Positions 19,663-61,479 of a DNA stretch of 64,000 bases are shown one piece after another; positions within the stretch are counted from its first letter, which is position 1, and each line of letters starts with the position of its first letter. Location: positions 124,001-188,000 of the IMG/VR virus record IMGVR_UViG_3300037110_000087; one strand, written 5' to 3'. The position numbers were made by a program, and so were the translations under genes. Below the pieces are notes generated by a model. That model had not been told where the DNA came from, ran no database searches, and was given only the letters and a program-made list of their open reading frames with translations.

Positions 19663-19914
19663 ATGAAACTGCTCCTGAGAGCATTCGTCAAAAAATCCAA
19701 TACCAAAGCTGAGGAAATCTATCAGTCTGAGGAATTACAGGGATTGTTCGATGAGGTGAGGGGGATCTATCCCAATTACAATTCTGACATGGTAGAGGCC
19801 GAGATTGCCACGGAATGGATTTTAGATAACTATGAGATCAGGTTCTGTAATGATGAGTTACCACTATTACTTAGAGAGGAATTATGTGGGATGGTCTTTG
19901 ACGGCCTGACCTAG
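19663..19914 (+). CDS. small acidic protein, leader-motif family member 1
   Basis: N-terminus MKLLLRAFVKKS; paralogous to the next ORF. Confidence 0.75.
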   Translation: MKLLLRAFVKKSNTKAEEIYQSEELQGLFDEVRGIYPNYNSDMVEAEIATEWILDNYEIRFCNDELPLLLREELCGMVFDGLT

Positions 19915-19923
19915 GAGAACACC

Positions 19924-20205
19924 ATGAAGCTTCATCTAAAGGCATTCATTAAGGTCCAGGCAGGCCATAAGGAAGAGGCTGAGAAGCTATTTCAATCCAA
20001 GGAGATAGATGATCTCGTCATCCGAGCAAGCGAGAATTGGGAAGAATGCTATTCAGATGAGGCTCAAGCTAGAGAAGCTGCTGAGTGGGTCATTGAGAGA
20101 TACGAGGCAGAGACCAATCAGATTCTACATGTCGAGATGAAAGACGAGTTGATGAAGTTAATCGAAGATCATTTCACCAGGACTTCTTACCCGAAGGTTA
20201 AATAA
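19924..20205 (+). CDS. small acidic protein, leader-motif family member 2
   Basis: N-terminus MKLHLKAFIKVQA; RBS aggag. Confidence 0.75.
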   Translation: MKLHLKAFIKVQAGHKEEAEKLFQSKEIDDLVIRASENWEECYSDEAQAREAAEWVIERYEAETNQILHVEMKDELMKLIEDHFTRTSYPKVK

Positions 20206-20415
20206 ATGAAACTTCATCTCATCGCCTATGTCAAGAAAGCTTCTGATTTCCCTGGTGCTGTAGAAGCAAATAAACGGTTTAATTCTGAACAATTTGATAA
20301 ATATAATATGACGGATGAAGCAGATAATGCGGAATTCGAAGACCAAGTTAGAAAAACGAACAAAAGCTTGGAAGATTATCGCAATAACCCCGAAGATTCT
20401 GAAGACGAGGACTAA
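20206..20415 (+). CDS. small acidic protein, leader-motif family member 3
   Basis: N-terminus MKLHLIAYVKKAS. Confidence 0.7.
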   Translation: MKLHLIAYVKKASDFPGAVEANKRFNSEQFDKYNMTDEADNAEFEDQVRKTNKSLEDYRNNPEDSEDED

Positions 20416-20835
20416 ATGGCAGATTTTGAAGAGAAAATTGTAATCACCAACGTAGCCAAGGCAACGCTTAGCTCCATTATTGCCTCTGGTTCCCCTACCT
20501 TCCAGATCTCTGCATTCTCTGTAGGGACCGGTGGCTATCTACCCAGGAATCCTTTCATTGCGGTTCCCCCTGATCCCAATGCTACAGGACTTACCAATGA
20601 GATTTTTAGATCCCAGAATGTACCAACGGAAAATATTGGTAATTCCACTAAGGTTTATGTCTGCGCAATTCAGCCGGGTGATGCAGTTGGCGCTCTAGGA
20701 GAGCTTGGACTCTGGGCCACTTATCTATCTGGCCCAAATGCCGGTCAGGTATTTTTATTCGCTATCCAGAATTTTCCAGTCATTTCTATTACCGGAAATG
20801 GAAGTTACACCTGGAGAATGGTCGTGCCCATTTAA
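20416..20835 (+). CDS. tail-collar fibre-like protein (DUF3751-like)
   Basis: ITNVAKA...ISAFSVGTGG...PDPNATGLTNEIFR...ELGL pattern. Confidence 0.6.
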   Translation: MADFEEKIVITNVAKATLSSIIASGSPTFQISAFSVGTGGYLPRNPFIAVPPDPNATGLTNEIFRSQNVPTENIGNSTKVYVCAIQPGDAVGALGELGLWATYLSGPNAGQVFLFAIQNFPVISITGNGSYTWRMVVPI

Positions 20836-20851
20836 CTTAAAATAGGAAGCT

Positions 20852-22888
20852 ATGAGATCCCCACTATCAAAAAACGCAGTCTTCTCATTGGAAGATCTGA
20901 AGGAAATTGAGAGCAAAAAGGCTTTTAGAGCTTCTATGGGTGGTGATCCTGGGGGAATGGGTAACAGAAACACTCCAGGGATCTCAGCATTCACACCTCA
21001 GTACCACGACTTATTGTATAACAATCTGGCACAGTTCCATACTCCAAAGGCCAGAAATCTTTACAATATGCTCATGTCTCAGATCTATAATTATGACACC
21101 ATCGCTGGACCTGCGGTTGATCTCTATGCTGAGATGCCATGGTCGAGCTTTGAGTTAACTGGGATCCAGGATAGATATGTTCTCCAGAAATATGAAGATG
21201 CCCTAGCCAATCTGAAGCTAGAGTATTATATGCCAATGATTAGTGCCACTTATCTGGTATTTGGTAGAGTCTGTCTCCATTTCCTGTTCGATCAGACTCA
21301 AGGTATTTGGTCCAACCTGATCATTCATGACGATTCAAACCTGTCAGTCAAACCTGTACCTTTCCTGAATGAAGAACCCTTGGTTGACCTGATCCCCAGT
21401 AAGGCTCTATTGGATTTCGTTAGCTCTAAAGATCCGAGAACTGAGGTCTATAAACAATATCTGTCTGACGACCTGATGGCTCAGATTAAAGCTGGCCGAT
21501 CGATCCCACTTGATCCGGCCAACACTTTATATCTACCAAAGCGCAGACTGCCTTCTGATTTTATCGGTACCAGTATTTTCTCAAGAATCATTGGTTTAGT
21601 CGTATTAGAGCGAGCACTTTTCAATGCCAGTACGGCTAAGGCACAGAGAGGTGCCGGTTCGATCCGTTTGGTGAAAGTCGGTAGAACTGGTGCAGATGGC
21701 TGGATGCCTACTGATGATGAAGTGAATAGTATCATTCAGTCAATGATGGTTGCAGAAGAGGATCCCGCTGCTTCTATCGTGGGTGTGAAGACTCAGGATG
21801 TGACTGTCGAGACTATCGCCGGTTCAGGTAAGGAAGCTCTGTGGAGCATTGCTGACGACGCTGATTATATTCAGAACGCGAAATTTAAGGCTCTTGGAAT
21901 CAACGAGGAATTAATCAATGGCAGTGCTACCTACAACAATATGGAACAGGCACTATCAGTATTCCTGGATAAGATCAGACATTTCAGGGATTATCTAACT
22001 AGAAAGGTCATCGTAGAGAAGGCTCTTGAACCTATCGCGAAGGCTCATGGCTTCTATCATAAAGACACCAAGGGTTTTAACCCCTCAAGTGTATATAACA
22101 GGCGTGGTGATGATAGCAGAAGTCTAAAGGATATTCAGGATTCCAAGTTGATGTTGCCAACGATTCAATGGCATAAACCCCTTGAGCCAAGAATGGATCA
22201 GAGCTTGATTGATCTGTACAAGGTGGCAGAGGAAGTTGGTCTTCCTATTAGCTTAAGAAGATGGTCCGTTGCGGTTGGTGCCAACTTATCCGATATCAAG
22301 AAAGAAGCTCATGAAGATCTCCGCGATCGCAAAGAGATGGCTAAGATCCTCCAGGAAAGAGAAGCTCTTGGAGTTGGTGATAGTTCTAGTCTATCCGAAG
22401 ATGATATGGGAGAAGATTTCGGTGGACCCGGTGGACCCGGTGGCGCTCCTGGTGGTGACGAAGGCGGCGGTACCATGGAAGAGTCTCCTGTCGAGATGGA
22501 CAAGGTTTCTCCTTCTGACCATTCCGTAGTTGATGGAGTTCCTCCACCTCCAGGTGGCGAGCCTGCTGCTACTAAGAACCGCTTGAACATCAATACCCAT
22601 CCTCTAGCTACTAAGACCGGCTTCTGTGGGGTCAACTGGACCAAGATCAGAGCATTCTCTAAGCTTGACAGTGTGGAGAGAAGAGAAATTCTTAGAGCTA
22701 TGACCGTGAAAGATCGAGCAGTCATCAAATACGCTCTTACTTATTCTGGAGATGAGACTCTAAACCAGGAAGAGATTGGTATTATTGCTAAATTGTTCCC
22801 GAAAAATGCTTCAATGAATAAGGCACATATTGCTCACTTGTACGCTAACAAGAGTCACGATGCGAGTTTATTGACGGGAATCGAATGA
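20852..22888 (+). CDS. portal protein with acidic Gly/Pro-rich C-terminal extension
   Basis: IAGPAVDLYAEMP, LDPANTLYL, GTSIFSRI, ALGINEELINGSATY; lies between terminase and protease. Confidence 0.8.
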   Translation: MRSPLSKNAVFSLEDLKEIESKKAFRASMGGDPGGMGNRNTPGISAFTPQYHDLLYNNLAQFHTPKARNLYNMLMSQIYNYDTIAGPAVDLYAEMPWSSFELTGIQDRYVLQKYEDALANLKLEYYMPMISATYLVFGRVCLHFLFDQTQGIWSNLIIHDDSNLSVKPVPFLNEEPLVDLIPSKALLDFVSSKDPRTEVYKQYLSDDLMAQIKAGRSIPLDPANTLYLPKRRLPSDFIGTSIFSRIIGLVVLERALFNASTAKAQRGAGSIRLVKVGRTGADGWMPTDDEVNSIIQSMMVAEEDPAASIVGVKTQDVTVETIAGSGKEALWSIADDADYIQNAKFKALGINEELINGSATYNNMEQALSVFLDKIRHFRDYLTRKVIVEKALEPIAKAHGFYHKDTKGFNPSSVYNRRGDDSRSLKDIQDSKLMLPTIQWHKPLEPRMDQSLIDLYKVAEEVGLPISLRRWSVAVGANLSDIKKEAHEDLRDRKEMAKILQEREALGVGDSSSLSEDDMGEDFGGPGGPGGAPGGDEGGGTMEESPVEMDKVSPSDHSVVDGVPPPPGGEPAATKNRLNINTHPLATKTGFCGVNWTKIRAFSKLDSVERREILRAMTVKDRAVIKYALTYSGDETLNQEEIGIIAKLFPKNASMNKAHIAHLYANKSHDASLLTGIE

Positions 22889-23322
22889 GAGAAAAGGATA
22901 TCAAAGGAATAATCACAACAGCTTTCCTAGTAGGTGATCTAGAGACTACTAGGGAATATATGAAGGTCCTGGCAGTCTCCAGGACCTCAGTCATCGCTGA
23001 TGAAAATTGGACTAAAGAGGATATAGAGAATGTCCTCAAAATCATGCATGGAGATGAATTCATTTCTAGCTTGATGCTCGTTTGCAAGGGATTTAACGAT
23101 GATCGGATTTATCAGGCATTGAAGACCGCACTAGCCGATTCTGATTTCTTGAACACCTATCGAGATAAGGTCCAATATTACATTGATCAGAATGTCTGGA
23201 TTGATTCATTAGTTAAGGTATGGATTGCAGAGAACGATAAATTAGGCATTCCCAGCGATGGACAAGAAAAATATTTGAGTGACTTAATTCATCAAATCCT
23301 TGGTGGATGCAAAGAGGAGTAA
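22885..23322 (+). CDS. hypothetical head-module protein
   Basis: Overlaps the portal stop codon (coupling). Confidence 0.6.
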   Translation: MREKDIKGIITTAFLVGDLETTREYMKVLAVSRTSVIADENWTKEDIENVLKIMHGDEFISSLMLVCKGFNDDRIYQALKTALADSDFLNTYRDKVQYYIDQNVWIDSLVKVWIAENDKLGIPSDGQEKYLSDLIHQILGGCKEE

Positions 23323-23324
23323 TT

Positions 23325-23459
23325 ATGTTCCAGAGATTTGGAACTCCTGCAGTACAGAGTAAAACATTTGAGGCGAAGGACATTGAGTTCGTCCGCAACA
23401 ATGTGAAGCCAGAAGATGACAAACTACCGGAAAAGAAAGAAAAGGAAGACTCAGAGTAA
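23325..23459 (+). CDS. 44-aa mini-ORF (MFQRFGTPAV...KKEKEDSE); absent from the ORF track
   Basis: RBS gaggag; fills the intergenic gap; start context resembles that of the protease gene. Confidence 0.6.
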   Translation: MFQRFGTPAVQSKTFEAKDIEFVRNNVKPEDDKLPEKKEKEDSE

Positions 23460-23504
23460 TAACTTCCTTAAGAGATGTTTTAATTGAAATAGATGGAGTA
23501 AATT

Positions 23505-24212
23505 ATGTTTCAGAGAACCGGTGGCTATGGCTTAAAGCAGATAGAGACTTTCTCTAATGCCCGTATTGCTGGAGTTAATCGTTATGCGGCCCTTAACACT
23601 CCCGTAGGTGTGATAGATATTTCTTGGCTAGAAGCTGCTGCAGCATTTCATGATGTTAGTCCCGATCCAAATGATTATGTATTCTCCATTCAGAGAGCCG
23701 TGGTTGCTGACATCCCCAATAGAAATTCGGATGCTTTTACCAAGGCTGAACTTCATCGTTACAATCCAAATCTTTCCCTTCCAGTCTGGGCTACCTTCAA
23801 TCGTCGCCCGATCTATTTCGAACATAATCAGGTCCCTAAGGATGCAAGAGGTATGCTCTTTAAGTCCTTCGTAGATGTGGAAGGCCCTTATCAGTTGGTC
23901 ACTACCCTTTCCGGTATTTCCAAACGTAAGGACGCTGATCTTGCGGCTGCAGTTAAGAATAACACCAGACCCTACTGGTCCATGGGTTGCGTCGCGGATA
24001 CTGTCACCTGTTCATTCTGCAAAAAGAAGGCTGCGGATACCAGAGAATTCTGCACCCATATTGCCAAGCAGCTTGGCTCCCTGATTGGGAACCAATTGGT
24101 ATATGAAATTCTGGGAGGGGTTACTTATATTGAATTAAGCAATGTCTCAGATCCTGCTGCCCTGATTGCTGGTAATGGTATTCTCAATATCGTCAATGGA
24201 ATTGCTATCTAA
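23505..24212 (+). CDS. prohead (capsid maturation) protease with Zn-finger insert
   Basis: NRNSDAF, YFEHN (His), WSMGC (Ser), CSFC...CTH, IELSNVSDPA; downstream of portal. Confidence 0.8.
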   Translation: MFQRTGGYGLKQIETFSNARIAGVNRYAALNTPVGVIDISWLEAAAAFHDVSPDPNDYVFSIQRAVVADIPNRNSDAFTKAELHRYNPNLSLPVWATFNRRPIYFEHNQVPKDARGMLFKSFVDVEGPYQLVTTLSGISKRKDADLAAAVKNNTRPYWSMGCVADTVTCSFCKKKAADTREFCTHIAKQLGSLIGNQLVYEILGGVTYIELSNVSDPAALIAGNGILNIVNGIAI

Positions 24213-24221
24213 GAGGTAACT

Positions 24222-25694
24222 ATGAAGCCAATGTTTTATTTTACTGGAGCGGCAAAAAACACTGTGAATTTTGCCGAGTTCAAGAAAGCAGCAGGATCCC
24301 TTCTTGCGAACGACAACACCCTCGTGGATGGTGATAATTATGCGCATGTCGAAACTGCTGATGGGAATGTCATTGGTCTAGTAGCATATGGCAAGAATCA
24401 GATCACCGAAGGAATGCTCAAGGCAGTTGGATCAATCGCTAGTTCTCAGTTGAAGGAAAAAGTAGAACCAAAGAAGTTTTCTGTCAATATTGCATTTGTG
24501 AAAAAGTCACATGAAGATCCCCCAATGCTCCCACAGGGCGTAGAGGATGAAGAACCAAAGGAAAAATCGAAAGGGGCTCCGGAGAAGCCAGAAGAAAAAG
24601 AGCCAAAAACTCCCTCCGTCAAGAATGGAGGAGAAACTGCCGAGTTTGAAAGAGAAGCTGATGAACCTGCTTCTACTGCTCAGGCTTTCCCAACCACAGG
24701 CACAGTAGAGAAAACCGCTGAACCGAGTCCGGAGTCCATCATTGAACAGCGTGAGATGGGTGGTGAGATTAGAGAAGCTACCGGTCCTGAGGATTCTAGT
24801 ACCTCAGTGAACATGCCCATGTATCCAAAACCACCAGATATGAAGGAAAAAATTGGTCTGGATCCCAATAAGTACACGACAGAGAACATGGTAAAGGTTT
24901 TATCAGATTTTATCTACAAAGAGATCCATGGTACTAAGGTCGATGGTATTAATTTGGCGGAATATATCAAACAACATGGCTGGGAAGGGACTCTTACCAA
25001 TGAAGACGTAAAGGTTCGTCAGGCAACCAGAGATCTGAGAGGGAAAATCCTCGAAAGATTTAACCAGTTTACCCCAGAGCAGCAGGAAGCCTTTAAGACA
25101 GCGTATAAGAGCAATTTGTCTCAGTGGTTGATGCGTGGTCCTCTGAACATTCAAGCTAAGCTCAGACGTAAGTCAATGGTCAAGAATGAAGTTGGCATTA
25201 TTTGGTTTGCCAAGTATCCCAAGGCTGCTTCGGCTACTCCAGAATCCTTGGTTTTCTATGCCAATCCAATCAACCTGATGCTGAAGACCGCCTCAGGTCA
25301 GATCAATGCTGCAGATATCGCGGCTACTTTCCATGGTGAGGGTGCGGAACAGAGAGCATTAAAGACCGCCAAGAGTCTGGTCAAGAAATACCCAGAGATT
25401 ACCTTTAATCATCATTGTGAGAATGACAAGGGCAAGGTTGAAGGTGCTAAGGATGTCAAGGAAGATCGTGTCATTAGTGAGGACGCTGGTAAGGAAGTAG
25501 ATCCTAAGGTTGAGGCCGCTGGTAAAGAAGTTGATAAACCCGTTGCTGAGATGGCTCAGGGTGAAGTGGTTGACAAGAAAGTAGTCGCTGCAGGTAAGCC
25601 TGACTTCCTGAAAAAGGAATGCAAGGAATGCAAGAAAGATCCTTGTATCTGCAAGAAAAAGAAAGAAGTTCCTTCTAGGGATATTAAAAGTTAG
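24222..25694 (+). CDS. scaffold/prohead core-like protein
   Basis: Follows the protease; highly charged E/K/P-rich linkers; C-terminal CKECKKDPCIC. Confidence 0.45.
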   Translation: MKPMFYFTGAAKNTVNFAEFKKAAGSLLANDNTLVDGDNYAHVETADGNVIGLVAYGKNQITEGMLKAVGSIASSQLKEKVEPKKFSVNIAFVKKSHEDPPMLPQGVEDEEPKEKSKGAPEKPEEKEPKTPSVKNGGETAEFEREADEPASTAQAFPTTGTVEKTAEPSPESIIEQREMGGEIREATGPEDSSTSVNMPMYPKPPDMKEKIGLDPNKYTTENMVKVLSDFIYKEIHGTKVDGINLAEYIKQHGWEGTLTNEDVKVRQATRDLRGKILERFNQFTPEQQEAFKTAYKSNLSQWLMRGPLNIQAKLRRKSMVKNEVGIIWFAKYPKAASATPESLVFYANPINLMLKTASGQINAADIAATFHGEGAEQRALKTAKSLVKKYPEITFNHHCENDKGKVEGAKDVKEDRVISEDAGKEVDPKVEAAGKEVDKPVAEMAQGEVVDKKVVAAGKPDFLKKECKECKKDPCICKKKKEVPSRDIKS

Positions 25695-25712
25695 AACATC
25701 TGAGGGTGTTCT

Positions 25713-26045: not shown

Positions 26046-26060
26046 TAAACTGGAAAATAA

Positions 26061-33928: not shown

Positions 33929-34339
33929 ATGGCCGAGCTTAGACTAATAGCAAGAATCAAAAAGGCTGGTTGGGGCCAGGGTAAAGAGGTTCATTATACT
34001 CATAACTATGCCTTGATAATAGAATTCAATAATGATCATTCTGATGCGTTTGAAAACTTCTTACACAGAACATTAGGAATCTGTATTGATGATGGTTTTA
34101 AGTATGATATTGCGCGTCCTGAAGGGGTAGGAATCATAAGTCCAATACTCAATCGCTTGAAGGACCTCATCCCAGATATCCTGAGAATCCCAGATTCACA
34201 CCGATATATTAAGGGGTATTTCTTCGAAAATAAACTAGGAAGAAGAATCGAGACAATCTGGGAAGCTCCTGAAATCACTGAAGAAGACAAGGAAATCTTA
34301 CATGGAATGGGCATTAAGGGCAGACATAAAAAGAAATGA
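33929..34339 (+). CDS. hypothetical protein with leader-like N-terminus MAELRLIARIKKAG
   Basis: RBS gagga before ATG at 33929. Confidence 0.6.
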   Translation: MAELRLIARIKKAGWGQGKEVHYTHNYALIIEFNNDHSDAFENFLHRTLGICIDDGFKYDIARPEGVGIISPILNRLKDLIPDILRIPDSHRYIKGYFFENKLGRRIETIWEAPEITEEDKEILHGMGIKGRHKKK

Positions 34340-49576: not shown

Positions 49577-49584
49577 GGAAATCA

Positions 49585-49851
49585 ATGCCCAGGGAATTTC
49601 TCTATGAGCCACTAACCATCGATTTTCTCCCTGAAGTAGCGGAGAAAATCGCAGTTATGCTAAGTATGGGCTACGAAACCCTAGATATATGGAATTGCCC
49701 TGGTGCTCCCAACGAATTTCAAGCCTTGGCCTACTTGCAGGACTATGTTAAAATCGAGTCGCTTCACCCAAGGCAGGTGAAGACCCTAAATTCCTGGATG
49801 TTGGGTGCAACGATCAGACAAGGAAAACTCGATGAACCAATTACACCTTAA
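49585..49851 (+). CDS. hypothetical protein
   Basis: RBS aagga; operon context. Confidence 0.55.
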   Translation: MPREFLYEPLTIDFLPEVAEKIAVMLSMGYETLDIWNCPGAPNEFQALAYLQDYVKIESLHPRQVKTLNSWMLGATIRQGKLDEPITP

Positions 49852-50521
49852 AGCCTTCGTAAAAGAATCCACTTCCTTACCAAAGTATTTGCTTCCAAGC
49901 TCAGAGAAATACCAACTATCCCTGGTAGATGGGCATTACAATGAATTCCTTCAGTGGTTCAGGGAACCCTATTCCAAGAAGTTCTTGAAATCGTTGGGTA
50001 TCAAAGATATTCTTTGCTCCGATGGCGAGGTATTCGAGACTAACGAAAACGCATGGCAGAACCACAAGAAGAAATACATTCCTGATTCATACAAGCGTGT
50101 TGAATTGCAGTTGGACTACATCAGTGAAGTTCCTGAAGACTTGCTGATTAAAACCTGCCCCTTCCCACAATCGGAATTCCAGAATCTATGGTATCGAAGG
50201 GAAACAACTGAAAATGTCACTAAGTTCATCCGATATCCTTGGGGAATCTGGTTGAGTACATCTACCGAATATTGTGCAATGAACAACCCCAATTACAAGG
50301 ATGCTATTCCCCTTTGGATTGATATTAGGAAGCCTTACTTCCCATTAGTCAGAGGTCAGGATGAACACTATGGTGATATCGGCAAGAAATTCCAGAGGTT
50401 TGTCCATTCCTTGAAATTACGAGGGTACGATTGTTATGTCCAGGGGTGTGAGACTAACAGCATTACCGTGTTCGGCAGAAATACCAAAATACTGAACGCC
50501 ATGACCGGGGAGCTAATGTGA
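49832..50521 (+). CDS. leader-motif protein (MNQLHLKAFVKES) with ADP-ribosyltransferase-like C-terminal domain
   Basis: LWYRRET, GIWLSTS, LWIDIRKP, LKLRGYDC, ITVFG: order resembles ART-PolyVal-type domains. Confidence 0.45.
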   Translation: MNQLHLKAFVKESTSLPKYLLPSSEKYQLSLVDGHYNEFLQWFREPYSKKFLKSLGIKDILCSDGEVFETNENAWQNHKKKYIPDSYKRVELQLDYISEVPEDLLIKTCPFPQSEFQNLWYRRETTENVTKFIRYPWGIWLSTSTEYCAMNNPNYKDAIPLWIDIRKPYFPLVRGQDEHYGDIGKKFQRFVHSLKLRGYDCYVQGCETNSITVFGRNTKILNAMTGELM

Positions 50522-51435
50522 AGCTGCATCTAATAGCGACTCCTAAGGTGGAAGAGAAGTTTACATTGGCCCTGGTTATTGGGGATAACAGAGAGTATAT
50601 GCCCGACTGGGGCAGTTTCTCTTCAATTGAGAAGGCCAAAGAATTCCTAGAAACAACCGCAGCGGAGGGTCACCTTTGTGACTTAGAAGCTAGCATTGGC
50701 TACTTCGTGTCAGAAACCAAAAGACCTGGATGTCTTGGATATTTTCCAATCCTGGCACCCTATTTTGGCGACGATTGGAAAGATAAATCCTACTATGACC
50801 ACATGGCTGATGCGAAGGTCGAGGTCTACAAGGGGAACAATATAGAACGAAGATTGTTGAAGAGCAAGAATATTGATAAAATCATGGATTATGTCTTCAG
50901 CACAGGGAAAAATCGTTGGCCTGAGGCCGAACCCATCATAATTAAGACCCATGAGGCGATTGAGTATGCCAGCGAGGTAATCAAGGGCCGCTGGCCTGAA
51001 CTTGAGAGCTACCTCCTAAGCAGTGACTCAGCTCATGAAATTCTCGCCTACGCTTTGCATATCTTCAAGGGCCGTTGGCCCGAGGCTGAACCCATCGTGC
51101 TTAGAGATTACTCAGCCTCCTATCATTATGCTATAAATATTATCAAGGACCGTTGGCCTGAGGCTGAACCACTATTACTCAAGGAAGGTAGTTCACACAC
51201 ACTCGCAACTTATGCTAGAGTGTGTGTGAAAGGTCGTTGGCCCGAGGCTGAGTCAATAATCCAAAAAGATCCGAACGAATGGTTCAAATATCTGCAGTTC
51301 CTATCAGATCCGACACCAGAAGGATGGGATCGGGAACCGAACAAACGATATTTGAAAGACATCGGAATAAATCCCGTTTATCTTGATATCAAACCCATCC
51401 CTGGTAAATGGAACACTCCCAGAGGTTACGACTAG
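50518..51435 (+). CDS. leader-motif protein (MKLHLIATPK) with five RWPE(A/L)E(P/S) helical repeats
   Basis: About 25-aa periodic repeats visible in the translation; GTG start. Confidence 0.75.
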   Translation: MKLHLIATPKVEEKFTLALVIGDNREYMPDWGSFSSIEKAKEFLETTAAEGHLCDLEASIGYFVSETKRPGCLGYFPILAPYFGDDWKDKSYYDHMADAKVEVYKGNNIERRLLKSKNIDKIMDYVFSTGKNRWPEAEPIIIKTHEAIEYASEVIKGRWPELESYLLSSDSAHEILAYALHIFKGRWPEAEPIVLRDYSASYHYAINIIKDRWPEAEPLLLKEGSSHTLATYARVCVKGRWPEAESIIQKDPNEWFKYLQFLSDPTPEGWDREPNKRYLKDIGINPVYLDIKPIPGKWNTPRGYD

Positions 51436-54700: not shown

Positions 54701-54704
54701 GAGG

Positions 54705-54938: not shown

Positions 54939-55215
54939 TCATTTCATTTGGGGTAAACACGAAAAATCTTTGATCTGGCAACCTATGACTACTATCCCAG
55001 ATCGAATCAAAGGGGGCCAACCTTTCCTTGCGCGATGGAAGAATTTCCCCTTCGAAGAAGATTGGGAAGTGTGCATCGCTTATTTCGGACAATTTGGAGA
55101 TTGCTGGATTCATTATCCCCTTGGATTCGTGCTGATGGCTGAAGGTCCAGGTACCGAAACCCGCGAACCTAAACTATCACCGGAAGAATGGTGCGATATC
55201 CCTGGCAAGTCATGA
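54928..55215 (+). CDS. Trp-rich hypothetical protein
   Basis: RBS aaggag; last + gene before the convergence point. Confidence 0.6.
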   Translation: MGPDHFIWGKHEKSLIWQPMTTIPDRIKGGQPFLARWKNFPFEEDWEVCIAYFGQFGDCWIHYPLGFVLMAEGPGTETREPKLSPEEWCDIPGKS

Positions 55216-55235
55216 GTTGGTATTGGTGGGTTCTC

Positions 55236-55628
55236 TTAATCGTGTGTATTTTGTGGCTCTGGATTGGTGACGAGGACGTCACTTACCTCTAATTGAGAAT
55301 CCAGTTCCTTTAGTCGATCTTCTAGTTGCACTGAATTTCGTAACTCCACCAGAGGTTCCATCTTGAGAGGGGCTACGGACTGATGAGTGAGAAGAATCAG
55401 GCACAAGGACATGAGTATTTTTCCTGCCCCTAGTTTAACGGCTCTCCAACCATTATTGACCCAGGACAGGCGAAATCGTGTCGGCTTCATCCCTCTGGCC
55501 TGGACGATGATTATCTGGATCACACTCATCCCCACGGGGGTTACGATCCGATCGACCGGACCATCAAGAGTCAGAACAACATTGGCCAGACCCTGGTTGG
55601 CCAGATGCTGCTTGAACGCTTCCCTCAC
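55236..55628 (-). CDS. hypothetical protein (start uncertain)
   Basis: Last ORF of the minus-strand block; GTG start; frame open further upstream. Confidence 0.5.
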   Translation of the reverse strand: MREAFKQHLANQGLANVVLTLDGPVDRIVTPVGMSVIQIIIVQARGMKPTRFRLSWVNNGWRAVKLGAGKILMSLCLILLTHQSVAPLKMEPLVELRNSVQLEDRLKELDSQLEVSDVLVTNPEPQNTHD

Positions 55629-55669
55629 CTGGGAAGATTTCGGGATTGGACCTCTTGATTGCGTTCATT

Positions 55670-55843
55670 TTAGTCGGCCAGGGGCAAGAAGTTGACAATG
55701 AAGCAGATGTGTCCACTTCGCTGACTCAGGACCTGCTCGAAATCCAACACCTGCTCAGCGGTCATCCTGGAGTCTCCTACAAGAATTGTGTTGCTCAGGT
55801 AGTAGAATCCCGTCATCTGATACACGATCAGCCACTTGATCAT
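55670..55843 (-). CDS. 57-aa hypothetical protein (MIKWLIVYQMTG...)
   Basis: Manual translation; ATGA overlap. Confidence 0.5.
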   Translation of the reverse strand: MIKWLIVYQMTGFYYLSNTILVGDSRMTAEQVLDFEQVLSQRSGHICFIVNFLPLAD

Positions 55844-55977
55844 ATGACCTCCAGATCAAAGAGACTACACCAATCTGAACTACCATCAGCCCATTGGACT
55901 CGGACACGACCATCTAGACCTTTGCTCCGTTCTACGATCCGTCCGATCAATTTTGAAGGACCTTTAAACTGGACCAT
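55840..55977 (-). CDS. 45-aa small beta-rich protein (MVQFKG...GRVRVQWADGS)
   Basis: Manual translation; adjacent to the upstream stop. Confidence 0.5.
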   Translation of the reverse strand: MVQFKGPSKLIGRIVERSKGLDGRVRVQWADGSSDWCSLFDLEVI

Positions 55978-55978
55978 T

Positions 55979-56215
55979 TTATCCCCCAGTCTTATGCCAT
56001 TTGCCATCAGCCTTCAGAGTGTATTCCTGGCCCTTGCCCGATCCTAGGCCGATGCCTTCGAAAGTGTGACAAGAGGAACAGGCACAGCCAGCGATGATCC
56101 CACCACTGGTTCTGATCCTGGCATCGTAGAACTTCCTAACGATCGGAGTCTCACAGAATTCACATTTGGTAGGGACCTCGCCTAACCAAGTCACTTCTTC
56201 CAGTTTGTTAGCCAT
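55979..56215 (-). CDS. small Zn-binding protein (CEFC...CSSC, GIGLGSGKGQEY)
   Basis: Cys pairs and a Gly-rich motif resembling a common phage family. Confidence 0.65.
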   Translation of the reverse strand: MANKLEEVTWLGEVPTKCEFCETPIVRKFYDARIRTSGGIIAGCACSSCHTFEGIGLGSGKGQEYTLKADGKWHKTGG

Positions 56216-56885
56216 CGATTTCACCTTGGGTATTGGATTGGGTGACCCGCACCTTGGAGGCTTCGACTTCCTCGCGGCGAAGCGCACCACGGAGCATGTT
56301 GCCGATGTTCATCCGGATCATACCGGCGTTGAGGGTAGCATACTTCTTCTTGAGAGCCGAGACATCCAGATACTTCATGACCATCGGGACCTCCCAGATA
56401 TCCTCGATGGTGGCCGCGAACCGCAAGGCGGTAGCGATCTTGTCGCCGTTGTCCTGATGGCGAACCTTGTTGTCATCGCGGACGGTAGCGTTCTTCTGCC
56501 GGAAGGTGGAGAACCCCGCCAGGGTGTTGCGGGGTTCGGTCCGCTCAGCCTTCGGGGCCTTGGGCTGCTTCGGGGCCTTCTCCGCCTTGACCTTCTTGGT
56601 CGGAGCGGCATCATGAAGGCTAATGGGGAAAGCTTTCCCCGCTTCCACATCCTTGGTCTTGTCCGCTTCGATGGCCTCCACCATGGCTTCAGCGGTCATG
56701 GGCGCAGCAGGGGCCTGGGTCATGGGAGTGAAGCTCTTGACGAAGACCTGTTCGGTCATTTCACCTTCGGCAGCACCCTGGTAGCTGATGTAGGTCCACC
56801 GGCCCCGCTTCTCGACGGACTTGACGGTGATGGCCCTGGGGTCATTGCTCCTGGGGTCACGGAACTCGGAATTGACGGTGATCAT
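56208..56885 (-). CDS. early protein with DNGD...LNAGMIRMNIGNMLRGA motif
   Basis: RBS AGGAGAAATCC; C-terminal motif resembles a phage hypothetical family; K/A/P-rich linker. Confidence 0.75.
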   Translation of the reverse strand: MITVNSEFRDPRSNDPRAITVKSVEKRGRWTYISYQGAAEGEMTEQVFVKSFTPMTQAPAAPMTAEAMVEAIEADKTKDVEAGKAFPISLHDAAPTKKVKAEKAPKQPKAPKAERTEPRNTLAGFSTFRQKNATVRDDNKVRHQDNGDKIATALRFAATIEDIWEVPMVMKYLDVSALKKKYATLNAGMIRMNIGNMLRGALRREEVEASKVRVTQSNTQGEIDG

Positions 56886-56925
56886 TGGATTTCTCCTGTC
56901 GAATGGCCCAATGGGCGATGTGAAA

Positions 56926-56954
56926 ATTCTAACATGATTGCTCATTTAGCGCAA
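56926..56954 (-). promoter_or_regulatory. sigma70-type early promoter TTGCGC-17-TAGAAT
   Basis: -35/-10 with 17-nt spacer and TGn extension. Confidence 0.65.
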
Positions 56955-56959
56955 TTATC

Positions 56960-57316
56960 CTAGCTGTGGTTGATGCGGCTCATCTGATATTCGATTTCGA
57001 ACTCATGCCATTGTTCGCGTTTCACCAGGGTTTCCTGCCTGACCTTGGCAGTGATTTCCGTGATGAACTTGCGGAGGTTGATGGTCCGGTGAGTAGGAGC
57101 AAGATGGGTGTAATTAGGAGAGTCCTGGCGAATCCAGCCCTCCACGCAGCCCTCTGCCTCACAAGGGAACCACTCTTCCCGGCCATTCCAGCCGCCCTGG
57201 CCATGGCACTCGCTGCACTCGCAGAAGCGGTGTTCCCGTTCGCCAGCCCAGGTGAGTTTCGGAGTGCGCTGGGTGGTCACAAGGCCGGTGGAGAAGGTCT
57301 GAGGGGTCATGGTCAT
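56960..57316 (-). CDS. protein with DnaJ-type Zn finger (CSECHGQGG...C..EGC.EG)
   Basis: RBS AGGAGAAATCC; CxxCxGxG motif. Confidence 0.65.
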   Translation of the reverse strand: MTMTPQTFSTGLVTTQRTPKLTWAGEREHRFCECSECHGQGGWNGREEWFPCEAEGCVEGWIRQDSPNYTHLAPTHRTINLRKFITEITAKVRQETLVKREQWHEFEIEYQMSRINHS

Positions 57317-57338
57317 GGGATTTCTCCTGTGTAATTCT

Positions 57339-57367
57339 ATTATACCACAGGGACAGATTTCACACAA
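57339..57367 (-). promoter_or_regulatory. early promoter TTGTGT-gaaatctgtccctgtgg-TATAAT
   Basis: Conserved copy of the repeated promoter. Confidence 0.85.
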
Positions 57368-57388
57368 GTATTTCTCTCTATGAGGAGT

Positions 57389-57562
57389 TTATAGGTCCCT
57401 GAGGGTGGCTCGGGCTAAGGCAGCACAGGCCGGACCTTCCTTTCCCATTCTCCCAATCTTACGGAGAACACGCTGGAGGGCCAAGTTCTCGGTTTCCAGT
57501 CTATCCCTGGTTTCTATCAGGGCCAGGGCGACCGTCTTCCATTCCTTGCTGGTTCGTGCCAT
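57389..57562 (-). CDS. 57-aa hypothetical protein (MARTSKEWK...)
   Basis: Manual translation; RBS aggag. Confidence 0.55.
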   Translation of the reverse strand: MARTSKEWKTVALALIETRDRLETENLALQRVLRKIGRMGKEGPACAALARATLRDL

Positions 57563-57570
57563 GTTCGCTC

Positions 57571-57780
57571 CTAGAAGGGCAACCTGTCATCGTCGGGTTC
57601 CACGCGCTTCCTGGGTTTGAAGACTTCGCGGGTGAGCGACTTGATTGCGGAATGGGGGTTACCCAAGTGAGCGAATGGGAAATCATGTTCCGGGTGCCTT
57701 GCGATTCTACCGGCTTCGACGGTGAGACAGCGCAGGTTGAGGTTGAGGTAGAAATACTTGATGAAAAGATGATGGCGCAT
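57571..57780 (-). CDS. 69-aa hypothetical protein (MRHHLFIK...)
   Basis: ORF in operon context. Confidence 0.45.
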   Translation of the reverse strand: MRHHLFIKYFYLNLNLRCLTVEAGRIARHPEHDFPFAHLGNPHSAIKSLTREVFKPRKRVEPDDDRLPF

Positions 57781-57788
57781 GAGATCCC

Positions 57789-57938
57789 CTACGCGGCTTG
57801 CAGCTTGTCGCAGTTGTCCAGGTCGCAGTTCCAGGAGTCGACCTCGTGCCAAGATGGACCCTGCTCCCGACCGGCGAAGCTGAGACAGGTCATGAGATCA
57901 CGGAAGGCGAGATAGAGGGAATTATAGAGTTCGTTCAT
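57789..57938 (-). CDS. 49-aa hypothetical protein (MNELYNSL...)
   Basis: Manual translation; ATGA overlap. Confidence 0.45.
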   Translation of the reverse strand: MNELYNSLYLAFRDLMTCLSFAGREQGPSWHEVDSWNCDLDNCDKLQAA

Positions 57939-58321
57939 TTCATCCTCAGCAATTCGTTGGCACGGTTGACAGCGATCTTCCGATCGTCGCCCTTGTAATC
58001 GGGGATGGTTTCGAGAAGGGCCGACAGCGCGTCTTCCAGGTCTTCGATCCGCTTGGCATCGTCGACCACTTCGACCATAAGCTGCTCGAATTCCTCCCGG
58101 CTATCCGCAGCGGCATAGCAACCCTGCCGATGCCGATCGAAGGGAACCTTCTCAAGTTCCTTAATCGCGACCATCGCTGGTATATAGTCAGCCACCAGTC
58201 CGCTGTCACCGTGATCAAGGAAGACGAACACGTGGTTCGCACACACGAGGAGTCGATTTCGTGCCTGATACCTGAACTTGGTGCCATGGGGGAGATCGAA
58301 CAACCGATGGAGTTCGCTCAT
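57935..58321 (-). CDS. hypothetical protein
   Basis: RBS aggagg. Confidence 0.65.
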   Translation of the reverse strand: MSELHRLFDLPHGTKFRYQARNRLLVCANHVFVFLDHGDSGLVADYIPAMVAIKELEKVPFDRHRQGCYAAADSREEFEQLMVEVVDDAKRIEDLEDALSALLETIPDYKGDDRKIAVNRANELLRMK

Positions 58322-58330
58322 TTCATCCTC

Positions 58331-58984
58331 CTAATTGGTCTGGCTGAGGTTCTTCATGGCACGGCGCACCTTGATCTGCCATGCCTGATTAGACTTCTCC
58401 CGGAAGAATGGCTCGAGGGTGCCCTGGGGGTCCTTGCCGACCAGCCCTTCGATTGCAGAGTCGTTCAGCTTGACGATTTCCTTGAACACCTTGGCCGGAT
58501 CGCGCTGGATGATACGAGCCAGCCAGAGTCCCTCTTCAATGACATAGTGGGACTCTACGTTAGTGGTGAGCCTGGGGAACATGCCAGCCAGAAGGACCTG
58601 ACGAGCCAAGAACGTCGATCCCAGCAGGAATTCAGAATCGAACACGCAGAGATCGAAGATGTAGAGGGTGTCCTTGATCTGCGGGGTCTTGGCATCAATC
58701 AACTCGCAGAGGAACACGGTCCACTTGCCAGGAGTGGCATACTTGACGAGCTTCCTAGTCCTGTCAGTCGGCTTCCACTGTTTGTGGACTTCACCATGCC
58801 GGTTCAGGTTGTGGATCTCGCCAGTCGGGGATACCCCGATAATGGAGTAAGTGCCGTTCATCTTGTATTGCCACAGCCAGCCCTTGCCGGTGTAGTGCGA
58901 GAACATCGCAGGAGCGACAGCGTATTCAGGCCGCGCTGGGAAGCGGAGGAAGGACGGTTTCCAGTCGGTGAAGGGCAGTGCCAT
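58331..58984 (-). CDS. stand-alone ATP-dependent polynucleotide ligase adenylation (NTase) domain
   Basis: Motif I QYKMNG, III LCEL, IIIa YIFD, IV EGLVGK, V WQIKVR; protein ends right after motif V. Confidence 0.8.
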   Translation of the reverse strand: MALPFTDWKPSFLRFPARPEYAVAPAMFSHYTGKGWLWQYKMNGTYSIIGVSPTGEIHNLNRHGEVHKQWKPTDRTRKLVKYATPGKWTVFLCELIDAKTPQIKDTLYIFDLCVFDSEFLLGSTFLARQVLLAGMFPRLTTNVESHYVIEEGLWLARIIQRDPAKVFKEIVKLNDSAIEGLVGKDPQGTLEPFFREKSNQAWQIKVRRAMKNLSQTN

Positions 58985-58992
58985 GGCATCCT

Positions 58993-59208
58993 CTACAGGT
59001 TGTTGTAGACGTTGACCGCACGGAAGAGGTCACAGCCCTGGTAGATGCTGGGGTCTTCCTGACCCGAACCAGCGACACCATGAGTGACCTTATATTCACT
59101 GGTCCCATTGAACCAGATTCGGCAAAGCATCCTTCCTCTGACTTCACTGGCGTAGAGGCTCCAGTGATTCTTCGCGTGTCGGATCACTTCGCTGACGCTG
59201 ATCTGCAT
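58993..59208 (-). CDS. hypothetical early protein (71 aa)
   Basis: RBS AGGAGAAATCC. Confidence 0.65.
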   Translation of the reverse strand: MQISVSEVIRHAKNHWSLYASEVRGRMLCRIWFNGTSEYKVTHGVAGSGQEDPSIYQGCDLFRAVNVYNNL

Positions 59209-59227
59209 TGGGATTTCTCCTACAACC

Positions 59228-59256
59228 AGTATACCATAGGGACGGATTTCACACAA
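59228..59256 (-). promoter_or_regulatory. early promoter TTGTGT-gaaatccgtccctatgg-TATACT
   Basis: Conserved copy. Confidence 0.85.
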
Positions 59257-59259
59257 TTC

Positions 59260-59586
59260 CTAGCTGCGAAGCCGCTCATCCCAGCAGCATTCACCAACCC
59301 AGCACCGAAGGTGGCCCAAGTTGGTCCGATGAGCAGTGACTATGCTGGTCTGCTTGTGGCAGATACCACACTCGACCTGGACGCGTTTGCGCGGCTTGGG
59401 AGTAGCCAGGGCCACACCGATCTCAGTCAGGAACCGGCCCAGGGCCACACGCTGTTCCTGGGTGCTGAGGGTGCCAGTCATGCCCTCTTCCTCAGCGCAC
59501 TGGATGGGTAGAGAGTCTAGGCGGTAGCAGCCTGATTCATCCAGTTCGAATCGGAACTGATCATTCTCGATCTTGATGGGTTTCAT
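59260..59586 (-). CDS. hypothetical protein with Cys-rich C-terminus
   Basis: RBS ggagg; CGIC...H...CC. Confidence 0.6.
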   Translation of the reverse strand: MKPIKIENDQFRFELDESGCYRLDSLPIQCAEEEGMTGTLSTQEQRVALGRFLTEIGVALATPKPRKRVQVECGICHKQTSIVTAHRTNLGHLRCWVGECCWDERLRS

Positions 59587-59607
59587 CTGATCCTCCGATA
59601 CCCCATT

Positions 59608-59623
59608 GGCCCCTTTCGGGGCC
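59608..59623 (-). terminator. intergenic GGCCCC-GAAA-GGGGCC hairpin
   Basis: 6-bp GC stem with GAAA tetraloop on the minus strand; no clear U tract. Confidence 0.35.
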
Positions 59624-59675
59624 TTGGGCGGGTTCCTAACTTAGCAGAATTGCTCTATCTGCCTATTTCAGAACC

Positions 59676-60458
59676 CTATTTCTTCGCGATGGCCTTCTTG
59701 GGTTCTTCGGGAGCCAGGGAGATCCCATCGGCCTTGAGGATGCTGAACGCCAGGGCCAGCAGATCCTTGTCGTTGCCCTTCTCATCCTTCTCCGCGATGA
59801 GCATGGTCTTGATGGCCGGGGTGCACAGGATGTCGATGGCCTGTTCGATCTGTTCCTTGCTGGGCAGCTTGCAAGCCGCTTCGATGGCGTCATCGCTGGA
59901 GATCGCGATCTTGGCTTCGGCCTGATGCAGGATCACCGCGACACCCGCGAATTCGGGGATCTTGGCGATAACCGGGCTGATGGCTGCGCTCAGCTTGCTC
60001 ATCAGGACCTGATTGCCCATGATCTCCGGATTGAAGTAGAACTGGTCGGCGGTCTTGACGTTCTCGCCCAGCTTGGTGATCAGGTCGGCGCTCAGGGCCT
60101 TGAGGATATCCTGCTGATCGCTGGTGATCTCGATGCGCATATCCCGGCGCTTGATCTGGCAGTCAGCGCTGGAATGGTTGTCTTCGCCCTTGAAGTTGGC
60201 CGGACGGTTGTGGGTCAGGCTGGCGATGTTGGAGTAGGTGCTGACGATCTGCTGCTTGATGGACGCTTCCTTGGATTCCTTGAGTCCCTTGAGGGTGTTC
60301 ATCAGGGCATTGATGGAAGCCAGTTCGTCCAGACCCTCGATCTCGTAGCTGGCCTTCACGGCGGTCTTCGCCTTGGTGACGGGAGCGGCAACGATGGGAG
60401 CCGATCCAAAGGCATCGAAGGCGGGAGCGGTCTTGGTGGCGGTGGCGGTCTTGGCCAT
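59676..60458 (-). CDS. early hypothetical protein (260 aa), strongly codon-biased
   Basis: RBS AGGAGAAATCC; C/G-ending codons. Confidence 0.8.
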   Translation of the reverse strand: MAKTATATKTAPAFDAFGSAPIVAAPVTKAKTAVKASYEIEGLDELASINALMNTLKGLKESKEASIKQQIVSTYSNIASLTHNRPANFKGEDNHSSADCQIKRRDMRIEITSDQQDILKALSADLITKLGENVKTADQFYFNPEIMGNQVLMSKLSAAISPVIAKIPEFAGVAVILHQAEAKIAISSDDAIEAACKLPSKEQIEQAIDILCTPAIKTMLIAEKDEKGNDKDLLALAFSILKADGISLAPEEPKKAIAKK

Positions 60459-60491
60459 TGGATTTCTCCTAGCGGGATTGAACCCTAAAAA

Positions 60492-60520
60492 ATTATACCA
60501 CAGGGACAGATTTCGCACAA
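60492..60520 (-). promoter_or_regulatory. early promoter TTGTGC-gaaatctgtccctgtgg-TATAAT
   Basis: Spacer identical to the 57339-57367 copy. Confidence 0.85.
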
Positions 60521-60536
60521 GTATTTCCGTGAGGGT

Positions 60537-60701
60537 CTAGAAGTCCCGGCCCTCAACCCAGGTGGCGAACTGACGGGCATATCGGGCGGTCCGCTGTTCG
60601 GCCAGCTTCCGCTTCCGCTTGGTGGTCCAGGGACCGGCCTCCCGGAACGCCAGGAATACCTTCTTGCCCTTCTTCCGGATGGGCTTGGGGGTGTGTGCCA
60701 T
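60537..60701 (-). CDS. 54-aa very basic protein (MAHTPKPIRKKGKK...)
   Basis: RBS ggagg before ATG at 60701. Confidence 0.6.
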   Translation of the reverse strand: MAHTPKPIRKKGKKVFLAFREAGPWTTKRKRKLAEQRTARYARQFATWVEGRDF

Positions 60702-60727
60702 GGGGGCCTCCAGGGGTGGACTCAAAT

Positions 60728-60793
60728 CGGGATGGTGGTGTTTCAACCCAGTCTGGAGGGGATTACCCTCGTAGGACTATGACCACCATCCCG
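60728..60793 (-). ncRNA. candidate structured leader RNA (12-bp closing stem with nested hairpin)
   Basis: CGGGATGGTGGT/ACCACCATCCCG perfect complement; inner AGTC/GACT and GAGGG/CCCTC stems. Confidence 0.4.
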
Positions 60794-60810
60794 GATTTCT
60801 CCATACCTAA

Positions 60811-60839
60811 ATTATAACATATCTTAGGATTTCACACAA
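60811..60839 (-). promoter_or_regulatory. early promoter TTGTGT-gaaatcctaagatatgt-TATAAT
   Basis: Conserved copy; divergent from the + gene at 60934. Confidence 0.8.
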
Positions 60840-60933
60840 TAGGTAAATTTTGCCTATTACACAGGGGTCCCGGAACCCACCTTCCAGATATGGCTCCGGA
60901 CGGGTTATAATTAGAAGGGGAGAGATCGTAGAG

Positions 60934-61479
60934 ATGCAGTTAGTTCTGACCGCCATAGTCGCGACATTCAACAAAGAGAAGGCCACAGCGAACCGGATCT
61001 GTGCCATGTTGAGGGAGTATAAGATCCCTTTCACCAAGAGCTACAATGGCATTTATGTCAAGTTTGCGCGTTTCATCATAAGAATCTCTAACCATAAGGC
61101 TCCAGTGTATAAGGATGATGCCCTTGCTCTACAGAGGAGACACAATCTGGATATTTCCCCAGGTAAGAACACCCTAGCAGAGGCATTTCATCTGATTGAG
61201 GATTTTCACAATGGGAGTGATAGTCTGGAGAACCGAGTTAAGAAAAGAACACATGAGGTCATAGATATCTTCAATGACTATGGAATTCCATTTACAATCG
61301 AGAAGATACCAAATTGTACTACTGTAATTCACTTTAATGACGGGTACAAGGTCAGAATATCAGATGCTCCCATGGGGGAACTGGATAAATACAACTGTGA
61401 TCTTGATCTATATCCGGGTAGTCCAGACAGCAAGCTAAGTGTAGTTGAATTACTATCTGAATTAACGAAGGTATCTTAA
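60934..61479 (+). CDS. protein with leader-like N-terminus MQLVLTAIV and an internal two-fold repeat
   Basis: Y(K/G)IPFT...RIS(N/D)...LD(I/L)(S/Y)PG occurs twice; preceded by GGTTATAAT. Confidence 0.65.
   Translation: MQLVLTAIVATFNKEKATANRICAMLREYKIPFTKSYNGIYVKFARFIIRISNHKAPVYKDDALALQRRHNLDISPGKNTLAEAFHLIEDFHNGSDSLENRVKKRTHEVIDIFNDYGIPFTIEKIPNCTTVIHFNDGYKVRISDAPMGELDKYNCDLDLYPGSPDSKLSVVELLSELTKVS

Follow-up and report, generated by a model that had tools for sequence, protein, structure and literature searches.

A short leader shared by the N-termini of diverse phage proteins, and its candidacy as a capsid-targeting address

Why do proteins with largely dissimilar bodies, encoded at scattered positions in one phage genome, begin with nearly the same dozen residues? 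The question is raised by bases 124,001–188,000 of IMGVR_UViG_3300037110_000087 (JGI Ga0395724_000015), a 64,000-nucleotide stretch of DNA, here called the window, from a jumbo-phage contig of 307,124 bp. A preliminary description of the window had listed ten N-termini with a common leader, two of them as weak matches, and had proposed that the leader is an address for packaging proteins in the phage head, analogous to the capsid-targeting sequence (CTS) of phage T4. The stretch that was read for the present analysis spans 136 kb (contig 70.8–207 kb) and was covered via pattern scans and look-ups on the window's contig. The leader is a real feature, strongly non-random and limited to a narrow lineage. 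That it is a lineage-specific N-terminal address of ~11 residues, working like the T4 CTS, is our tentative answer to the question, held with a little less than even confidence.

The leader motif and where it occurs

All ten N-termini translate as they had been described, including that of the gene at 50518, which has a GTG start, and each of the ten genes has a Shine–Dalgarno-like purine run 5–10 nt 5′ of its start codon. The genes are listed here with their scores, where available, against a leader profile of 12 columns (~23 bits) built from 17 leaders of this genome.

19663–19914, + strand: leader gene, 83 aa, MKLLLRAFVKKS, first of a trio of paralogues between the large terminase (TerL) and portal genes; 29.5 bits
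19924–20205, + strand: leader gene, 93 aa, MKLHLKAFIKVQ; 33.2 bits
20206–20415, + strand: leader gene, 69 aa, MKLHLIAYVKKA, with an acidic tail; 32.2 bits
33045–33263, + strand: leader gene, 72 aa, MKLDLKATPVTS, with GAGGGG 6 nt 5′ of the start; 23.4 bits
33929–34339, + strand: leader gene, 136 aa, MAELRLIARIKKAG; 24.9 bits
34500–36737, + strand: variant leader, 745 aa, MSFRFSATM (F-x-F-x-A)
45668–46867, + strand: doubtful member, 399 aa, MGKLRLAFKTVV, without the spacer residue before Ala, directly 3′ of the ClpP gene
49832–50521, + strand: leader gene, 229 aa, MNQLHLKAFVKES, with a spacer of ~95 aa and then an ART-PolyVal-like domain at residues 109–229
50518–51435, + strand: leader gene, 305 aa, GTG start, (M)KLHLIATPKVEE, with a body of RWPEAEP-type repeats; 29.2 bits
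60934–61479, + strand: leader gene, 181 aa, MQLVLTAIVATF, weakest of the strong set; 17.3 bits

The consensus is M-[KR]-L-[H/R/K/x]-L-x-A-[F/T/N]-[V/I/P]-K-K-[A/S], ~11 residues in which L, L, A and V/I alternate so as to lie on one face of a beta-strand, and the column counts over the 17 leaders are K12, L16, H11, L16, x, A17, F/T, V/I, K11, K. Both the 34500 and the 45668 proteins had been called weak matches. The latter remains one, at 3.9 bits, whereas the former proves to be a true variant, since it has a paralogue of 714 aa outside the window that begins MTFRFSAVI.

Enrichment of the motif at N-termini, which had been proposed as a check, was examined in the window genes. The 55 called genes (18,733 aa) contain L.L.A 15 times, 8 of them 1–3 residues past the start codon and 7 internal, while the internal rate of 3.7e-4 per residue over ~400 N-terminal opportunities leads to an expectation of ~0.15 near starts. 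The Poisson tail for 8 such occurrences is ~5e-12, or ~1e-8 when the paralogue trio at 19.6–20.4 kb is counted once. Similarly, ^M.{0,2}L.L.A matches 7 of 61 window open reading frames (ORFs) versus 1 of 750 ORFs in control loci. When the contig was scanned in six frames with the profile, scores above 9 bits were found only at N-termini, bar one off-frame ORF of 16 codons; these scans include the sequences on which the profile was trained, and the independent test is the relative L148, described below.

Leucine in the leaders is encoded by CTG, CTT, CTC, CTA, TTG or TTA and alanine by GCA, GCC or GCG, and nothing in the DNA 5′ of the leader genes is conserved past the ribosome-binding site. 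Because synonymous codons vary and upstream DNA is not shared, the selection at the protein level that had been suggested is borne out. A nucleotide repeat or promoter cassette is ruled out by the same two observations. The leader had also been judged not to be a Sec signal, and we agree: charged and hydrophobic residues alternate with no hydrophobic run, and the leader has no hydrophobic core, RR motif or Cys as looked for in Sec, Tat and lipoprotein signals.

Beyond the window, strong leaders are clustered just upstream of it (MKLHLKAFVKKA, MELHLVATIQKK, MKLHLVANIRKA and MKVHLQATVIKT), stand in a row on the opposite strand (MRLHLKAHITRQ, MKLHFVAKGKGF, MKLHLVANIKQP and MKLTLRAFLKTA) and are further represented by MKLNLKAFVKQS and MKLILTARVKMA. 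The variants are of two types, K-x-K-F-x-A-K-K...YPTIxF in three genes and M[ST]FRFSA in two large paralogues. In total, the 136 kb include 16–18 strong and ~6 variant leader genes, all of them in the ~100 kb that hold the virion genes. A strong leader is found in 16 of 113 genes at contig 89.6–190 kb, versus none of the 58 flank genes (Fisher p 0.0014, with borders set post hoc), and the leader-bearing share of the virion-gene region is ~1/7. Two more strong leaders, those of the 33045 gene and of the second half of a fused ORF, were missed by the crude gene caller. The flank genes without a leader include Toprim, RecA and an array of small ORFs, and the leader is absent from all annotated enzymes and canonical structural proteins (TerL, portal, helicase, RusA, ClpP, HNH, PhoH, MoxR, RecA and Toprim). 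At least 18–24 diverse small proteins carry the leader module.

Several of the genes outside the window merit individual description. The 402-aa ORF at L006:1797-3005 (contig 118,035–119,243, ~6 kb 5′ of the window) has two in-frame leaders, at codons 1 (MKLHLKAFVKKA) and 153 (MELHLVATIQKK), the second with its own Shine–Dalgarno sequence, and looks like two leader genes that a lost stop codon, or else an error in sequencing, has run together. In three genes (L006:3009-4064, L006:4074-4943 and L018:19226-19738) the variant leader is followed by a module of ~30 aa, KK.YPTIxFxKxNxSGNDK[SG]AVxPL, and this module recurs, together with the leader-like strand that precedes it, inside a 351-aa protein at about residue 145. 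The MKLILTARVKMA gene (159 aa, L141:7964-8443, − strand, contig ~188.8–189.3 kb) has no Pfam match, and we take the C-terminal half of its product (DGRLLIASGTTRLAA) to resemble a ParB/sulfiredoxin-type motif. Two leader genes are started at a later Met in the JGI gene calls (L018:10780-11199 and 11200-11588) and thereby lose the leader, which the Logan calls retain (L019:4623-5434); because gene calls can trim leaders in this way, leader systems are easily missed.

Carrier bodies and close relatives

In pairwise BLASTP comparisons, most carriers are alike only over their first ~12 residues. Within the trio, the 19663 and 19924 proteins share 31 % identity (E 6e-11). The preliminary description had held that outside this trio the bodies are unrelated, which applies to most of them but not to the 34500/50518 pair, 49832 or 33929, each of which has relatives of its body. 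The 34500 and 50518 proteins have WPEAEP-type repeats in common (E 1e-5), a paralogue of 49832 lies outside the window (L014:2233-2655, E 5e-23), and the 402-aa ORF has in its first half the same C-terminal sequence as 33929. Repeats of the form (K)GRWPEAEP or GPWPQGEP are found in three leader proteins of two phages (50518–51435, 34500–36737 and L148:9252-9620) and have no Pfam match. Two carriers terminate in ...GIKGR(H/N)K (window 34300–34339 and L006:2210-2252), and the DNA encoding this ending doubles as the Shine–Dalgarno sequence of the next gene. Word-indexed protein searches returned the queries themselves and one orthologue only. The 19924 protein has an orthologue in another metagenome, P0002 (66 % identical), with the N-terminus MKLRLTAFIKDS, and the orthologue of 49832, P0004, begins MKLRLKAHVAAS and is followed by a gene that begins MKLKLMAVVTAP.

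Among the carriers, Pfam and PHROGs gave only one family, ART-PolyVal (PF18760), an ADP-ribosyltransferase (ART) domain. The protein encoded at L014:1546-1842 scores 32.5 bits against a gathering cut-off of 31.2, and that at L014:2233-2655 scores 26 bits, below this cut-off; in these two the domain begins at residue 26 or 31. The 49832 protein is a third ART-like carrier, joined to the group by its BLASTP match, in which ~95 extra residues lie between leader and domain and the Y-H-G motif reads Y-R-R. In the three ART-PolyVal-like carriers the domain begins 20–100 residues past the leader. An exhaustive profile search found 20 members of this ART family, and those from other phages begin at a conserved NPFPxSxF...YHG(T/S) block or with unrelated N-termini. 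An AlphaFold2 model of an ART-like carrier, made on the alignment of this family (pLDDT 88, pTM 0.80), has its first strand from residue 32, with values below 50 for residues 1–9, and its top Foldseek matches are all of the ART fold (AcrIF11 (6kyf), RES, MbcT and PARPs), though weak (best E 7e-3, TM ~0.45–0.49). The leader is a separable N-terminal add-on.

Among 50,697 phage records, no nucleotide-level match to this phage was found with megablast, tblastn with the 490-aa scaffold-like protein, a 1571-aa protein and the 49832 carrier gave no match, and only TerL matched cultured phages, at ~30 % identity to PaBG and Erwinia jumbo phages. The PaBG paper contains nothing bearing on the leader, and a scan of bacterial genomes with a profile of the prohead protease gave no match. 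The host is probably Gram-negative and not a Firmicute.

One relative, L148, whose protease is 70 % identical, carries the leader. The profile, trained on the window's genome alone, gives five hits of 14–25 bits in a six-frame scan of L148, all five N-terminal, and no internal hit of 8 bits or more; a check of the profile in relatives, as had been recommended, thus confirms the position of the motif. With variants counted, L148 has two to three leader genes in the TerL–portal gap and five to six in the gap from portal to protease. While the flanking head genes of the two phages are orthologous, their leader genes are unmatched, save one with the WPEAEP repeat. The leader slots are hyperplastic between the two phages, and the leader is the sole part that is kept. 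Eighteen further relatives with homologous head modules and protease identities of 31–57 % gave no profile hit in the ~380 genes surrounding those modules. The 145-aa, 490-aa, 110-aa and 1571-aa proteins of the head module are detectable solely in the window phage and the leader-bearing L148. Scans of IMG/VR for MKLHLKAF or MKLHLxAx[VI]K found genuine ORFs in this contig only, the rest being short chance ORFs, and a leader-pattern scan of metagenomes gave chance matches only, among the matches listed.

Leaders of a separate kind may exist in other phages. In a GC-rich contig from an unrelated phage, a homologue of ART-PolyVal (L145:7263-7925, − strand; MNLRRMAARISGS) and its neighbour (8330–8764, + strand; MTLLAVAARIAAK) have an AARI[AS] element in common close to their N-termini, and AARI[AS]-like starts are also found on the distant homologues P0011 and P0012. 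In two other contexts, N-termini of the ARI[AS] type were not seen on distant ART homologues.

The head module and its candidate partners for the leader

The genes of the head module are as follows, together with the ClpP gene that is considered below.

16836–19196, + strand: TerL, start of the head module (phrog_17415, E 3e-107)
20852–22888, + strand: portal protein (phrog_16240, E 1e-98)
22885–23322, + strand: acidic protein of 145 aa, encoded after portal and before protease, where T4 has gp68
23505–24212, + strand: prohead maturation protease of the T4 gp21/herpesvirus assemblin type (phrog_18299, E 1e-31)
24222–25694, + strand: 490-aa E/K/P-rich protein, directly 3′ of the protease
44925–45641, + strand: phage ClpP homologue (PF00574, E 4e-29)

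The gap between TerL and portal holds three leader genes, and the order from there is portal, the 145-aa acidic protein, a 50-aa protein, the protease and the 490-aa E/K/P-rich protein, an arrangement like that of genes 20-67/68-21-22 in T4. The protease model (pLDDT 76) has as its best Foldseek matches the three chains of 5jbl (T4 gp21) at a probability of 0.96, though with a weak E of 1.6e-2, and herpesvirus proteases come next. Its His107 and Ser159 are invariant across 15 homologues, and the protease is a candidate for the enzyme that removes the leader. The 145-aa protein, a candidate prohead-core protein, has an orthologue in L148 (36 % identity, E 1e-24) with a leader-like N-terminal extension, MLELQLKSRIVA. 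From its position and composition the 490-aa protein encoded at 24222 is a putative scaffold, and it is also a candidate receptor for the leader. Nowhere else inside a window protein is the second half of the leader matched as well as at residues 86–97 of this protein, FSVNIAFVKKSH (window 24477–24512). The protease and the small ORF that precedes it (23325–23459) have a different N-terminal motif in common, MFQR.G or MF[QV]R.G; this motif is kept in L148 (9895–10023 and 10001–10735), and residues 1–26 of the protease are predicted to be disordered.

Elsewhere in the window, the annotated genes also include a baseplate hub/lysozyme, a tail-fibre protein, ClpP, an HNH endonuclease, RusA and a DinG-like helicase. 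Window 55200–60600 is an island of 56 % GC, versus ~44 % elsewhere, whose genes lie mostly on the minus strand, have no family matches and include no leader genes; it may be a recent insert. ARAGORN called a tRNA-Asp with anticodon ATC at 5480–5552 (− strand), antisense within a 524-aa ORF (5210–6784), and this call is probably a false positive. No chimallin or other nucleus markers turned up in the 136 kb, in which no search aimed at them was made.

What the leader may do

If the leader works as the T4 CTS does, it would dock its carrier on the scaffold or core of the assembling prohead. The carrier would then be caught inside the head, where the gp21-like protease would probably trim it, and would be injected together with the DNA; the ADP-ribosyltransferase-like enzymes would be among these carriers. 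The CTS, found on IPI-III and Alt of T4 and processed by gp21, is likewise an N-terminal tag of ~10 residues that forms the sole conserved part of diverse, fast-turnover proteins in variable slots, the T4 internal proteins having been described as 'highly diverse ... with only a conserved CTS' (PMC3012670). The likeness extends to ART-like enzymes among the carriers and to portal, putative core proteins, gp21-like protease and putative scaffold in matching gene order. Injection has been predicted for the ARTs of polyvalent proteins, and the prototype of a packaged and injected ART is T4 Alt (PMC5512222). The polyvalent proteins of Iyer et al. 2017 resemble the present carriers in their ART-PolyVal effector domain and predicted delivery with DNA (PMC5512222), and differ in that their domains are parts of a single giant protein that MuF or portal domains anchor, whereas here separate small genes each have a leader. 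Like the present phage, the giant phages phiKZ, 201phi2-1 and SPN3US are jumbo phages with a gp21-like protease, which in them processes many head-associated or ejected proteins. The propeptides of their head and inner-body proteins are cut at S/A/G-x-E, and, to our knowledge, are long and do not share a common N-terminal motif of 11 residues; no S/A/G-x-E regularity is found after the leader here.

As to the packaging address that had been proposed, nothing found contradicts it, and the add-on character of the leader, the ART-like carriers, the slots in the T4-like head module and the turnover of bodies fit it; on the other side, the leader is unlike the T4 CTS in sequence, and no consistent protease site was found after it. 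These and several further observations weigh against a T4-style address. The T4 CTS, MKTYQEFIAE, is acidic and ends in an L/I-x-E cleavage site, whereas the leader, MKLHLxA[FT][VI]KK, is basic, has a beta-strand pattern, shares M-K alone with the CTS and includes no recognisable Glu site. In the carriers inspected, no fixed cleavage motif or Glu distance was found after the leader, L/I-x-E of the T4 type and S/A/G-x-E of the phiKZ type occurring inconsistently. The carriers number ~20 or more, as against a handful in T4, and some lie outside the structural modules: five of those in the window (33045, 33929, 49832, 50518 and 60934) stand amid phosphoesterase, helicase, RusA and HNH genes. At 14–20 % of the genes over ~100 kb, the leader set is large for cargo, and an ART-PolyVal protein of 842 aa beside the window (L141:2988-5516, − strand, contig ~191.7–194.2 kb, adjoining metallophosphoesterase and HNH-repeat genes) begins MEIVAVSGK and has no leader. 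A low pLDDT over the leader is to some extent what the ART model should give, as the alignment is without depth in that segment. AFVKKS, at residues 91–96 of the 24222 protein, is not kept in the L148 orthologue, and as a shared protease or docking site it is for that reason a weak hint. The co-occurrence of leader and head-module proteins is based on two genomes, and the gene searches of window and contig did not find a major capsid protein.

Judged by sequence, a nearer precedent than the T4 CTS is the motif cut by the protease Prp, which the preliminary description did not consider, and this too counts against a T4-style address. Prp processes L27 in Firmicutes as well as capsid, scaffold and tail proteins of staphylococcal phages (PMC9405229, PMC5744158), at the motif MLxx(D/N)LQ(F/L)F'A(S/H)KK (PMC9405229), and what the peptide does in phages is still unsettled (PMC9405229, PMC5744158). 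Both are short N-terminal K-L-x-L...A..KK elements on non-homologous phage proteins. Laying L-H-L-x|A on L-Q-(F/L)-F|A brings the leader's first conserved L to P4, its polar residue to P3, the second L to P2 and the invariant A to P1′, with K-K thereafter; Staphylococcus aureus L27 begins MLKLNLQFF'ASKK. Also in favour of this reading, one carrier reads MKLNLKAFVKQS, and a pro-sequence would suit toxic ARTs. If the leader were a propeptide of this type, it would be cut by a dedicated host or phage protease, and its removal would couple maturation or activation to assembly without targeting the capsid. We regard this as rather unlikely, as the hallmarks of Prp substrates, the Q-(F/L)-F residues, are missing, with Gln at P3 replaced by H, R or K and Phe at P1 by K, I, V, R, T or Q. 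Moreover, the carriers are accessory and not capsid, scaffold or tail proteins. An approximate pattern for a Prp-like protease found no match in 116 kb, none of the scanned phage proteins matched PF04327, and the cultured phages nearest in TerL have hosts among the Proteobacteria, a group that lacks the long L27 and Prp (PMC9405229).

The alternating hydrophobic residues (L3, L5, A7 and V/I9) would equally suit a conserved first beta-strand that serves oligomerization, folding or binding of a common partner such as a chaperone or host target, with neither virion sorting nor cleavage. Several carriers have a second strand-like segment 8–15 residues past the leader, no linker-like composition follows the leader in the carriers inspected, and the YPTIxF variant can act away from the N-terminus, because its module repeats within one protein. 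Such a docking strand is nevertheless unlikely, given the strict N-terminal position in the six-frame scans, the location of the leader outside the ART domain, where it is predicted to be disordered and is kept despite the 95-aa insert, and bodies that range from all-helical acidic proteins of 69 aa to repeat proteins of 745 aa. An address for some other destination (tail lumen or baseplate, membrane, nucleoid or a phage-built compartment) is an improbable alternative as well. Six leader or variant genes are clustered between tail-fibre and baseplate genes, another cluster lies within a tail-fibre operon, and in contractile injection systems cargo is known to be loaded into the tube by way of N-terminal signals; but the densest leader arrays, in both genomes, are in the head module among TerL, portal and protease, and for a membrane destination the leader lacks a hydrophobic stretch. 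It is very unlikely that the leader is a degron by which Clp proteolysis, perhaps with the phage ClpP, times the lifetime of accessory proteins. Met-basic-hydrophobic N-termini are among the recognition classes of ClpX, and the ClpP homologue is encoded directly 5′ of the 45668 gene, though that doubtful member is the only one with a positional link to ClpP. Leader genes are in late or structural operons and are packed into the head module of L148, and we know of no precedent for a phage marking ~20 of its own proteins for turnover. Finally, a constraint on translation initiation or mRNA, or a coincidence of MK-hydrophobic starts, is close to excluded. Phage genes often have Lys as second codon and an A-rich start, and the more distant relative L002 has loose MK-hydrophobic starts in 3 of 21 genes, but here the amino acids are fixed over varying codons, the profile holds ~23 bits, the Poisson tail is ~1e-8 or lower, and neither the 58 flank genes nor the ~380 genes of 18 relatives include a leader.

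N-terminal leaders that address proteins to the virion or act as propeptides are already known as a kind, and what is new is this variety of leader, for which docking on the prohead core, cleavage, packaging and injection are inferred. It is possible, though we put it forward with more reserve than assurance, that the leader represents an undescribed addressing code unrelated to the T4 CTS and confined to a narrow clade of jumbo phages, in which a head-core or scaffold protein specific to the clade would recognise the basic beta-strand tag of 11 residues, and at least 20 interchangeable effectors, ARTs included, would be loaded into the virion and injected. If so, new genes would gain delivery simply by acquiring the tag, making this a portable, plug-in cargo system, and capsid-targeting leaders would have evolved more than once and with differing chemistry. 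The leader would also be a short portable tag with which to load foreign proteins into large capsids. If it is a packaging address, then the injected arsenal of an uncultivated jumbo phage, here ~20 small ORFans together with ART-like enzymes, could be read from its sequence.

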